Shown piece after piece: positions 6,451 through 8,552 of a stretch of 64,000 nucleotides of DNA (position 1 is its first letter; each line of letters starts with the position of its first letter). This stretch comes from Prasinococcaceae sp. CCMP 1430 (lineage: Eukaryota > Plantae > Prasinodermophyta), in NCBI GenBank assembly GCA_013416795.1, contig RQSC01000002.1:286603-350602 (forward strand), in the 5' to 3' direction. The notes beneath the pieces were generated by a model. That model was not told the origin of the DNA, did not search any database, and saw nothing but the letters and a program-made list of their open reading frames with translations. The position numbers and the translations under genes were made by a program.

Positions 6451-8552
6451 TCACCAAGGCCTCGGCGCTGGCGGTGGTGTGAGAGGCGGCGGGGCACCCC
6501 AGCCGAGCAATTTGTACGCCTCGACCTCGACGTCGTGCAAACGCATGCCCCGCGTTGTCTTGCGCAACACATGCAAAAGCGCCGAGCGCGAGCGCGAGTT
6601 CTCCTGTATCTCGCGCTGTGACGGGCGTCGCACATCGTCCATGCTCATCGCAGGCTGCACGCGCAAGGCCTCGTACGCATCTGGTTGGCTCTCGCGGATA
6701 TAGCGCACGATGTCGGCTGTGTCGCGCGCCTCCTCGTGTTCCCTGTAGAAGTCCATCACGAGCTGGCACTCGGAATACTTCCACGTGAGCAAACCCAACC
6801 TGCCACCATGCTTGAGCAGCTCGAGCGCGCCACACATGCCGCGTGTCATCTCCTCGAATTCCTGGTTGAGATGGATGCGAAGCGCCTGGAAGGTCATTTT
6901 GGCAGGGTGCATGGCTTGGTATTCCTTGCCCTTGGCGCGTGCCACGAGCTCCGCAAAGGGTCGCGTGCGCTCGGGCAGCGTTCCAGCGCGCACCGCCAAC
7001 ATGATGGCATCGGCGATGCGGCGCGCGGCGGCCTGAAAGGGGCAAGCAAGAAGAAAGCAAGACATCAAGTTGTCAGCGCCAAGCGTGGCAGGTCACGCGC
7101 TCGGGCTTCGGGTTCGCGCGCACATGCGCACCTTGTCACTCTCCCCGCCCACCACGAGAATGTCGATGAGCTCCTCACGCCCGATTCGCTTCAGCAGCGC
7201 ACTTGCGGGCTCGCCACGGGTTTGGTCGAAACGCAGGTCGAGTGGGCCGTCCGCCTCAGGCCTGAAGCCGCGACCTGCCGCATCGAACTGCGGGCTGGAG
7301 ATCCCTAGGTCGAGGAACACGCCGCTCACACTGCCAGCGGCCTCCTCACCCAGCGCCTGCACCATGTCGCCGAAAGGCCGGTGGTGAATAGTGAACCTGC
7401 TGTCCTCCTTTTCGAGCTGCTTGGCCACCAGGATTGCCTCCGGATCAAGATCGAAGGCGTGTAGCCGGCCCTTGGGCGAGAGGCGGGAGAGTATAGCGCG
7501 CGAGTGCCCGCCGCGCCCGAACGTGCCATCAACGTACACGCCGTCCGGATCTGGGAGCACCAGGGCACGTAGCGTCTCATCGACCATGGCGGGTGTGTGC
7601 GTGCCGATGTCCTGCACAGTGCCGCGCGCCCACTTTGCGCTGTTGGTGGCGAGCGTCACGCTGATGTTGCGCCCGCCAAATCGTGCGCCGTTATGTGACA
7701 GCGCCTTCCGCTGTCCCTCGGCGCTGCCGAGCGTCAACCAGCCAATGCCTGTCGAGCATGCGTCGTGCGCACGTCCGTGCGTGCGTCGTGAGAGAGCACG
7801 CGCGCGTGTGTCAGCGCTGAGCTCGGCGTCGCGGCCCGTCGAGATGTGCTCGCGGGTAGGGCGCTGTATACGCGCCCGTGCGCAGTATCACGCCCTCGCA
7901 CCTTTGCACTTGCCAGTCGACGGGTCGTGCATCAGCCGTATGTCGCCCACGATGTCACAACCGTCGAAGAAGTCCCTGAGCTGGTCCTCGGTGGTGCTGT
8001 ACGGCAGGTACTTCAAGAACACTTCTCTGCCCTCCGACGCGGCAGCAATTTCTGCGGCTACAGCCTGCGGGTCCTCGGCCGTCACCGTCACACGGGACGC
8101 CCCGCCGCACCTGCCACCGTCTCGTTTGAGCGCCTCCGACACGTCGGAGGGCTCGAGGAACGCCACGCGTGCCTTGCCGCGCGCGACGTTCACTTTAGTG
8201 GCCTTGGGGAAGAGCGCTCGCACCTCGCCCTGCGTGGCGTCATTTGCGAGGCCTTCCACGATCACCGCGCGGCAGCCCAGCGGGACGACGGCGGCGGGCG
8301 TCCATGCCGGCGTCCACGCCGGTGCGCGAGCAGCGCTGGCGCACTTGTCGGCTTTGTCCTTCTTCGCCTTCTTCGCCTTCTTGTCCTTCTTCCCACCCTG
8401 CGCGTCCTGCTTTCCCGCCAGCGTGCCGGTGGCGCGCTCCGCCTTCGCAGCCTTCTTGGCGGCCTTGCGCGCCTCGCGCGCCGCGGTGCGCCGCGCCTTC
8501 TCGGCTTCGTCGCCGGCGCCGCCGGCGCCCCCACTGCCCTCCTCGCGCGGGC
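6451..8552 (-). CDS. rsmH: Lys-rich/RRM-RRM/RsmH (MraW, rRNA m4C methyltransferase) fusion; introns 7749-7901 and 7033-7131; start lost at the N at 8553
   Basis: RsmH motifs [61 protein letters not shown]. Upstream RRM VFLKYLPYSTTEDQLRDFF, whose RNP1 (KGIGWLTL) is rebuilt across the intron. Confidence 0.88.

Follow-up and report, generated by a model that had tools for sequence, protein, structure and literature searches.

RRM-RsmH fusion proteins of algae: a conserved family of predicted m4C methyltransferases that may act on RNA outside the organelles

Introduction

RsmH enzymes use S-adenosylmethionine (SAM) to methylate N4 of a cytidine in RNA. The E. coli enzyme (MraW, PDB 3TKA) produces N4-methylcytidine (m4C) at position 1402 of 16S rRNA. 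Nuclear-encoded homologues occur in eukaryotes: METTL15, which carries a mitochondrial presequence, has no RNA recognition motif (RRM) and is recruited by RBFA, makes m4C839 of mitochondrial 12S rRNA, and mt-SAF14 of Trypanosoma brucei is a mitochondrial, highly divergent protein in which the MraW-like RsmH fold is re-used together with extra sequence. To our knowledge, the only ribosomes on which RsmH, METTL15 and the plant protein CMAL are known to act are of the bacterial type, i.e. those of bacteria, mitochondria and plastids, and m4C is no accepted mark of eukaryotic cytosolic or nuclear RNA. CMAL, the nuclear-encoded chloroplast orthologue of RsmH, accounts for m4C1352 of plastid 16S rRNA; the paper describing it mentions no RRM and, concerning distribution, states only that RsmH orthologues occur in plants, several algae and vertebrates (PMC7102989). 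Here we describe a gene of the alga Prasinococcaceae sp. CCMP 1430 that joins RRMs to an RsmH domain. It lies in a stretch of 64,000 nucleotides (contig RQSC01000002.1, positions 286,603 to 350,602), which we call the window and from whose first letter all positions are counted.

The RsmH domain of this gene is similar to that of the E. coli enzyme: PF01795 and TIGR00006 are complete, identity is about 41% over the domain and 50% in its N-terminal half, the SAM motifs and the DLG(V/I)SSPQ(L/F)D loop are the same, and the template modelling (TM) score of the structural model is 0.89. Unlike a bacterial rsmH gene, the algal gene is eukaryotic and spliced, stands outside any dcw-cluster context, and codes for N-terminal RRMs, a basic tail and a C-terminal extension. 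METTL15, which is likewise a nuclear-encoded eukaryotic homologue with the same fold and SAM pocket, is distant in sequence. CMAL, also a nuclear-encoded enzyme of the family in a photosynthetic eukaryote, is set apart by its description rather than by sequence, as a plastid-targeted, plain RsmH orthologue. In mt-SAF14 the sequence has diverged strongly, whereas the catalytic residues of the RRM-RsmH proteins are invariant. The same kind of event is known from N4CMT of bdelloid rotifers, in which a bacterial N4-cytosine methyltransferase was joined to a eukaryotic chromodomain and put to nuclear use; N4CMT differs in being a DNA methyltransferase of another family, with a chromodomain instead of RRMs as its eukaryotic targeting or reader domain.

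Our proposal is that the window contains an intact three-exon gene of a conserved algal family, whose product would be an RNA m4C methyltransferase working outside the organelles. Taken as a whole, and judged from sequence comparison, this statement has in our view about an even chance of being right; its parts are of unequal strength and are discussed separately below.

Results

A spliced gene joins two RRMs to a complete RsmH domain

The gene occupies positions 8552-6451 of the minus strand and consists of three exons separated by two GT..AG introns, both in phase. Exon 1 (7902..8552), is truncated at its 5' end by an assembly gap; its last base is the first of a Gly codon that the intron splits, and the GT donor follows at 7901-7900. 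Intron 1 (7749..7901; 153 nt, GTGCGA...CGACAG, AG at 7750-7749) is a phase 1 intron with in-frame stops. Intron 2 (7033..7131; 99 nt, GTGCGC...TTTCAG), which was absent from the initial annotation, is in phase 0, contains an in-frame stop and falls within the RsmH domain, between positions 156 and 159 of the Pfam profile. Because the lengths of both introns are multiples of three, the exons look like one frame in spite of these stops. The spliced product has 615 residues, with the stop codon at 6453-6451, and the GC content of third codon positions (GC3) is 0.80.

The nearest relative (P0168) is a protein of 650 aa coded by an uninterrupted open reading frame (ORF), positions 260-2212 of a 3037-nt, 71%-GC marine metagenome contig from an uncultured marine eukaryote. 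In a global alignment with the spliced window protein, 438 of the 614 aligned positions are identical (71%; 83% in the RsmH domain), and there is not a single gap at either splice junction. The initial annotation had described one frame leading from a Lys-rich segment through a degenerate RRM and a clear RRM into a complete RsmH, and this is borne out by the translation, by Pfam and by the collinearity with P0168. Also correct was its statement that removal of intron 7749-7901 restores the RNP1 motif KGIGWLTL: the junction joins ...GKCK and the split Gly to IGWLTL, in agreement with the family consensus CKGIGWITF. Its conclusion that the fusion is spliced and nuclear-encoded stands, given the two spliceosomal introns, the GC3 value and the collinearity with the intronless relative.

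One could suspect that the fusion is an artefact of the gene model, i.e. that adjacent RRM and RsmH genes happen to share a frame. The intron lengths, both multiples of three, would allow this. The second RRM is, however, split by intron 1 and completed in exon 2, which continues directly into RsmH, and in many species the same order recurs in uninterrupted ORFs, both of genomic contigs and of Trinity and MMETSP transcripts. We regard such an artefact as extremely improbable and the existence of a real fused gene as practically certain. A pseudogene or a contaminant was also considered and ruled out by the spliceosomal introns, the retention of all invariant family columns and the low dN/dS (ratio of nonsynonymous to synonymous substitution rates).

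The first codons of the gene are not in the window. They are missing, together with the 5' untranslated region, at a single N at 8553 that acts as a contig joint; by homology about 4 codons are concerned, the start codon among them. Exon 1 contains no Met, there is no in-frame ATG upstream of the N (the sole nearby ATG runs into TAA after two codons), and the coding character ends at 8553; the 5' end was therefore lost at the joint. The number of missing codons seems to be about four, as MGKR of P0168 precedes the residues aligned to PREE of the window protein in a low-complexity alignment; the N-terminus of P0168 reads MGKRPRDE and continues in mixed-charge repeats. Isolated single-N positions occur in the window at 8553, 36284, 40954 and 53438, and the abrupt loss of coding at the first of them indicates a joint of unknown size, not one ambiguous base.

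All parts of the protein are coded on the minus strand. By translation, residues 1-85 (8296..8550) form a basic, K/R/E-rich low-complexity tail, which includes KKDKKAKKAKKD. RRM1 (residues 86-168; 8047..8295) has degenerate RNP motifs without the RNP aromatic residues and stays below the Pfam RRM_1 threshold (15 vs 20.7 bits), and is recognised by its fold: an AlphaFold2 (AF2) model from an 8-sequence alignment (predicted local distance difference test, pLDDT, 80) shows the beta-alpha-beta-beta-alpha-beta order, and all of the top 50 Foldseek matches are RRMs. Modules homologous to RRM1 are present in P0168, P0006, P0259, P0004, P0009, P0021 and P0002. RRM2 (residues 172-250; 7648..8037), assigned by Pfam RRM_1 and the family alignment, is canonical, with RNP2 VFLKYL and the RNP1 motif given above, and adjoins RsmH. 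As it is split by intron 1, only its first half (profile 1-39) is scored on exon 1 (43.1 bits) and the remainder stands at the start of exon 2; in intronless relatives the RRM_1 profile is covered from 1 to 69/70 with 36-64 bits. The modelled RRM2 equivalent of P0168 matches the RRMs of HuR and TIA-1 with TM scores of 0.83-0.91 in Foldseek. A linker (residues 251-263; 7609..7647), disordered in the model of the relative (pLDDT <50 in the equivalent stretch), leads to RsmH.

The N-terminal part of RsmH (7132..7608), at the end of exon 2, contains the SAM motifs GTFGRGGHS and FDLDP and the 10-residue catalytic-loop motif (PF01795, TIGR00006, 3tka), and the C-terminal part in exon 3 (6559..7032) contains the family motifs, among them a 33-residue motif and NSRSRSALLHVLRK (PF01795; 3tka E 3.7e-14). 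The cut-off of PF01795 (Methyltransf_5) is 27 bits; exon 2 reaches 129.6 bits with profile positions 3-156, and exon 3 reaches 81.4 bits with positions 159-308. The domain is thus complete, as the initial annotation had said, and contiguous across intron 2. The two halves score 126.7 and 73.8 bits with the RsmH equivalog TIGR00006, whose cut-off of 154.3 is passed by full-length relatives (198-214 bits; P0168, 202.6). The protein ends in a family-specific extension (6451..6558, stop codon included), a helix (model residues 418-429) followed by ..LGWG.PP...RPW, which is conserved in the family and absent from bacterial RsmH. The proline-rich end itself, ...LGWG.PP...RPW (6454-6510, minus strand), is common to the clade of the window protein (P0001, P0002, P0168) and absent in other clades of the family.

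The label 'nucleolin-like' given in the initial annotation goes too far. The best PDB match of exon 1 is indeed nucleolin (E 9.5e-7, over two RRMs), but it stands among generic RRM proteins, and the similarity amounts to that of RRMs in general plus a basic tail. The RRM-RsmH protein has just two RRMs and the tail and no glycine/arginine-rich (GAR)/RGG region, whereas nucleolin has four RRMs, acidic/Ser stretches and a C-terminal GAR domain.

A family alignment of 28 members has 58 invariant columns, none of which is altered in the window protein; of the 41 near-invariant columns, four differ in it (F223L, H508Y, P529D, L530I). Compared with P0168, dN/dS is 0.24 for the whole protein, 0.14 for RsmH, 0.26 for RRM1, 0.36 for RRM2 and 0.68 for the basic tail, the least constrained part; these values are approximate, since dS is about 1. 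The fusion is conserved under purifying selection.

The RRM-RsmH family is widespread in algae

A search of 1.84 billion cluster representatives with exon 2 gave dozens of proteins, 300-860 aa long, whose alignment begins at query residue 1-2 and so passes from the RRM half over the linker to RsmH. All seven that were tested (P0002, P0003, P0005, P0008, P0009, P0012, P0018) contain RRM_1 and Methyltransf_5 by Pfam. With a full-length member as query, a word-indexed search recovered 365 proteins at E <=1e-20; of the 120 matches listed, nearly all are annotated with PF01795 and PF00076. Named members come from Symbiodinium spp., Cymbomonas tetramitiformis, Prymnesium parvum, Bathycoccus prasinos, Tisochrysis lutea and Chlamydomonas sp. 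UWO241, further ones from MMETSP and Trinity transcripts and from many Tara and other marine contigs. The family thus spans prasinophytes, one Chlamydomonas, haptophytes, Symbiodiniaceae and Prasinococcaceae sp. CCMP 1430. Its distribution is patchy, since no Chlamydomonas reinhardtii or Volvox member was among the matches listed in the search with the UWO241 protein. The search for the same architecture in other algae, which the initial annotation had suggested, has therefore yielded many members, in green algae, haptophytes and Symbiodiniaceae; the graft that the annotation had inferred is not confined to this genome, the gene being one member of a large and old algal family. Public databases already hold such proteins under automatic names ('rsmH', or 'RRM domain-containing protein' for Cymbomonas in UniProt), and our literature searches found no description of RRM-RsmH proteins. 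The novelty lies in the recognition of the family and in the implied biology and not in the one locus, which is ordinary for the family.

Relatives carry additional modules, which are RNA-binding domains of eukaryote type or enzymes of RNA modification: a RanBP zinc ribbon, KH, three RRMs, a C-terminal TrmY-like SPOUT domain or a pseudouridine synthase. The SPOUT domain (PF04013; NF002560, 64 bits) is present in the Symbiodiniaceae proteins P0012, P0184, P0187 and P0192, in genome models as well as in Trinity transcripts, and in P0223 its place is taken by a PF00849 pseudouridine synthase. These fusions suggest coupled modification of one RNA.

The family has a sister clan of RsmH paralogues, found only in dinoflagellates (Polarella, Effrenium, Ceratium; P0024, P0035, P0043, P0048, P0052, P0142 and relatives), with the architectures WW-RsmH, WW-RsmH-RRM, WW-RsmH-SH3 and a tandem double RsmH (P0024, 762 aa, two PF01795 stretches). 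We considered whether this clan could be the organellar form and rejected the idea: it is restricted to dinoflagellates, most of its members have no obvious presequence, and they carry WW or SH3 domains.

The RsmH domain looks catalytically competent

Among solved structures, exon 2 is by far most similar to E. coli RsmH (3tka; E 4.6e-39, 137 bits), followed by mouse and human METTL15 (76 and 67 bits), Thermotoga (70) and Thermus (67), and exon 3 ranks the structures in the same order. A profile of the family scores 277 bits with E. coli RsmH, 187 with Thermus, 183 with Thermotoga, 178 with METTL15 and 91 with mt-SAF14. The two stretches of 22 and 10 residues which the initial annotation had singled out as matching E. 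coli RsmH are both present and align with their E. coli equivalents, DLGVSSPQLD included.

The SAM pocket of METTL15 is formed by T96, S99, H102, D119, R120, Q145, F146, D169, S173, Q176 and E298 (PMC10828496). T96, H102, D119, F146, D169, S173, Q176 and E298 are all kept in the RRM-RsmH family, and the equivalent of S99 is Arg, as it is in E. coli. The motif G-T-F-G-x-G-G-H, the acidic residue of xDxD with the following aromatic residue, D-L-G-x-S-S-x-Q and the Glu of SLE all occur in the window protein, and none of them varies among the 28 members of the alignment.

Several motifs distinguish the family from bacterial RsmH. The domain opens with GTHTPA(M/L); a 16-residue motif stands in place of RGFSFxxDGPLDMRMD, a 26-residue motif in place of HPATRxFQAxRI (HPAK for HPAT), and GRLGIITWKHSECAIV in place of GRLxVISFHSLEDRxVK; there is a 2-residue insertion after GE; NSRSRSAxLHVLRK is a further distinguishing motif; and the C-terminal extension reads ...DLExxAYxxLGW..., a helix in the model.

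The structure was modelled with AF2 and the family alignment on residues 205-650 of P0168, the 71% identical relative, in place of the window protein. The model (pLDDT 88.7) shows an RRM, a disordered 15-residue linker and the two-domain RsmH fold, i.e. a Rossmann domain with an inserted helical domain. The top Foldseek match of this fold is 3tka (TM 0.89, 39% identity), followed by 1wg8 (Thermus), METTL15 and 1m6y. With the SAM pocket and the fold apparently intact, the RsmH domain looks catalytically competent, and the protein is, on the evidence of the alignment and the model, probably an active m4C RNA methyltransferase.

The alternative is a catalytically silent protein that uses the RsmH fold as an assembly or RNA-binding factor. 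There are precedents, as the activity of METTL15 is dispensable for its role in mitoribosome biogenesis (PMC11197891) and mt-SAF14 is a MraW-like structural factor; moreover, the FHSLEDR motif of RsmH is altered in the family, and the window copy has the substitution H508Y. The residues of the SAM pocket and catalytic loop are, however, invariant in 28 diverse members and the RsmH domain evolves with a dN/dS of 0.14, unlike a pseudoenzyme, while mt-SAF14 is far away by its score with the family profile. We consider a silent factor improbable.

The RsmH domain is of proteobacterial type and probably an old acquisition

The closest sequences from named bacteria belong to Gamma- and Betaproteobacteria, Oceanimonas among them. 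A scan of bacterial genome contigs with the N-terminal half of RsmH gave seven confirmed loci, the best in Oceanospirillaceae (50%), a number too small for a broad tree of labelled bacteria. For the dinoflagellate sister clan the nearest named bacteria are Burkholderia, Paraburkholderia, Teredinibacter, Pseudomonas and Thauera. A first maximum-likelihood tree (93 domains, LG+C20) contained three clans: the RRM family, which is monophyletic (Shimodaira-Hasegawa-like approximate likelihood ratio test, SH-aLRT, 100), another clan of eukaryotes (97) and the bacteria that had been sampled (99). The approximately unbiased (AU) test did not reject a tree in which the RRM family was attached to the E. 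coli-like clade (p 0.55); under this constraint the tree was even 2.2 log-likelihood units better. In a second tree of 84 domains, with more labelled Proteobacteria and rooted on Firmicutes and Bacteroidetes, the RRM family (100) is sister to the dinoflagellate-only clan (99, stem 0.63); the joint, long-stemmed eukaryotic clade and the RsmH sequences of Beta- and Gammaproteobacteria form a polytomy (88), and this group as a whole stands apart from Firmicutes, Bacteroidetes and Acidobacteria. METTL15, CMAL, cyanobacterial and alphaproteobacterial sequences are in neither tree.

We can thus say with fair confidence that the domain appears to be of E. coli-like, proteobacterial type, and that its capture appears to be old and not specific to this genome. 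Of the 'gamma-proteobacterial type' stated in the initial annotation, the affinity remains, the domain being far nearer to E. coli RsmH than to METTL15 (137 vs 76 bits with exon 2), while a specifically gammaproteobacterial source is not shown, owing to the polytomy. The phylogeny it had called for likewise gives a partial answer, namely a separate eukaryotic clade near the beta- and gammaproteobacteria in trees without METTL15, plastid and cyanobacterial sequences. Judged by similarity scores alone (277 bits for E. coli against 178 for METTL15 with the family profile), derivation from an organellar copy is unlikely. For a recent transfer from Gammaproteobacteria there is no support: the trees neither show nor reject a nesting of the family among gammaproteobacterial sequences, and its eukaryotic span, over green algae, haptophytes, dinoflagellates and the present alga, is broad. 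As to a giant virus as vector, viral contigs searched with the nearest relative and, separately, with the family alignment gave no match.

Complete homologues lack organellar targeting sequences

The likely cellular location was surveyed in the 107 complete family members that start with Met. In 55 of these, no more than 30 residues precede the RRM that adjoins RsmH. A hydrophobic N-terminus resembling a signal peptide occurs in none of the 107 (the single match is a run of Ala), and 69 have at least seven K/R in a 12-residue window of the N- or C-terminal tail. The basic tail changes end between clades: it is N-terminal in the prasinophyte proteins and in the clade of the window protein, whereas the proteins of Prymnesium, Symbiodinium and MMETSP start like MQPVKDAAGHLEGYEVFIKYLP and end in KKRKR-type tails. 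In complete haptophyte and dinoflagellate homologues the RRM begins 10-20 residues after the Met. Import into haptophyte and dinoflagellate plastids requires a signal peptide and a transit peptide. Taken together, the import rule, the short stretch before the RRM and the missing hydrophobic N-terminus make a plastid or mitochondrial location unlikely. A targeting peptide like that of METTL15 or CMAL was not found in the complete homologues, whose tails are charged and rich in K/R/E.

The competing reading in this respect is that the protein is the organellar RsmH of the alga and makes m4C in plastid 16S or mitochondrial small subunit (SSU) rRNA, with the RRM as an accessory rRNA-binding module as in chloroplast RRM proteins. 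Every characterised RsmH-family enzyme acts on bacterial-type SSU rRNA (PMC7102989, PMC6821322, PMC7641309). Plastid ribosomes do contain RRM proteins, and cS22/PSRP2 is among the matches of the family profile; in addition, the named members all come from plastid-bearing lineages and the N-terminus of the window protein is missing. Against these points stand the N-termini of the haptophyte and dinoflagellate homologues, too short for the bipartite signal that import demands there, the consistent absence of a hydrophobic N-terminus, the K/R/E-rich tails and the large distance of the family from METTL15, and we consider an organellar enzyme rather unlikely. The initial annotation had suggested a possible retargeting outside the organelles; this has become plausible through the complete homologues, which have neither transit nor signal peptide, while for the window protein itself the N-terminus is not visible. 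A location outside the organelles is, from the homologous sequences, what we lean towards, with less confidence than we have in the enzymatic activity.

Genomic context

Head to head with the RsmH gene lies an apparently intronless gene for a TRM11-like tRNA guanine-N2 methyltransferase (8893..10422, plus strand; PF01170 E 1.3e-12; archaeal Trm11 6zxw/6zxv E ~1e-7). The divergent arrangement noted in the initial annotation is real; the TRM11-like gene, beginning at 8893, is a neighbour only and stands outside the fusion. The gap at 8553 separates the two genes, so that no claim can be made about the distance between them or about a common promoter. On the other side, two long Ala/Glu/Arg-rich ORFs (522 and 404 aa; 3565-6363, plus strand) are coiled-coil-like and have no Pfam match; the second is convergent with the RsmH gene and ends 88 nt from its stop codon.

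The GC content of the window is 62-75% per 2-kb bin, except in two bins that contain gaps. AT-rich islands of 35-60 nt are found at 6354-6400, 8576-8623, 1578-1623, 15031-15079 and 29332-29369, the first two flanking the RsmH gene just beyond its ends; TTGACA, TGTACAA or TGTAA-like words occur in several of them. These islands may be transcription start or polyadenylation signals.

Discussion

The structure of the RRM-RsmH proteins suggests how they could work. The basic tail might serve nuclear or nucleolar import, general affinity for RNA, or both at once. A flexible linker connects the RRM or RRMs with the catalytic domain, which they, together with the basic tail, would hold at a substrate RNA or ribonucleoprotein; there RsmH would methylate a cytidine at N4 with SAM as the donor, giving m4C. 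The site of action would be outside the organelles, in the nucleus, the nucleolus or the cytosol. The catalytic domain would come from an RsmH like those of beta- and gammaproteobacteria, either gained once by an ancestor or spread among algae, in both cases long before the present species.

The most economical target would be the P-site cytidine of helix 44 (h44) of 18S rRNA, the equivalent of E. coli C1402, in pre-40S or 40S particles, because every characterised enzyme of the family modifies the P-site cytidine of h44 and the sequence around this cytidine is universal in SSU rRNA. The assignment is by analogy and must be regarded as tentative, weaker than the assignment of the activity or of the location. 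Judging from the family-wide changes in RNA-facing motifs and from the TrmY-like and pseudouridine synthase fusions of relatives, the target may also be a different one. The protein could be a non-organellar m4C writer for some other substrate (mRNA, snRNA, tRNA, another rRNA site or single-stranded DNA), whose specificity is set by the RRMs and not by the RsmH domain. Besides the altered RNA-facing motifs, the relatives with a TrmY-like pseudouridine-N1 methyltransferase, a pseudouridine synthase, KH or zinc-ribbon modules would fit such a role, as would the sister dinoflagellate clan, in which RsmH is combined with WW and SH3, modules of protein interaction that are not specific for rRNA. 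There is, however, nothing positive for any alternative substrate, and the known enzymes of the family all hit the same cytidine; we rate another substrate as low in probability, about level with the organellar enzyme.

Returning to the proposal of a non-organellar m4C methyltransferase, several observations weigh against it. FHSLEDR, which is shared by bacterial RsmH and METTL15, has become TWKHSEC throughout the family, with Ser-Glu alone retained, and the near-invariant His of this motif is Tyr in the window copy (TWKYSEC). RGFSF, in another conserved RsmH motif, is RGFRPE family-wide, and the SAM-stacking Arg of (I/L)DRD, which in METTL15 (R120) lies on the adenine, is Leu or Met. Family-specific changes of this kind in conserved motifs may point to another substrate or to a changed activity. 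The K/R-rich tails suggest nuclear localisation and are no proof of it; in the window copy the first few codons are missing, which leaves its own N-terminus unseen, and the restriction of all named members found to plastid-bearing lineages would also fit a plastid-linked role. As to the product, we found no m4C in eukaryotic cytosolic or algal 18S rRNA in our literature searches, nor do we know of any report of m4C in eukaryotic cytosolic rRNA, and the equivalent 18S cytidine is 2'-O-methylated in yeast and human.

What gives the proposal its interest is that the family is conserved and under purifying selection, appears catalytically intact by its sequence, and combines RRMs and tails resembling nuclear localisation signals with the lack of an organelle address. 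It is also an example of a captured bacterial RNA-modification domain that was recombined with eukaryotic RRM, RanBP zinc ribbon, KH, WW, SH3, SPOUT and pseudouridine synthase domains. It is conceivable, though we would not call it likely, that in marine algal lineages a nuclear or cytosolic RsmH paralogue puts m4C on the P-site cytidine of 18S h44 or on another nuclear-encoded RNA, and that in Symbiodiniaceae this modification is coupled to a pseudouridine-N1 methyltransferase-like domain. If this is true, the RRM-RsmH proteins would be the first m4C writer, and their product the first m4C, described for eukaryotic non-organellar RNA. The family provides a testable case for the writing of m4C on non-organellar RNA in some eukaryotes, perhaps at the decoding centre of the 80S ribosome, and it does so in ecologically dominant phytoplankton: Bathycoccus, haptophytes and Symbiodiniaceae, together with the present alga and its nearest uncultured marine relatives.

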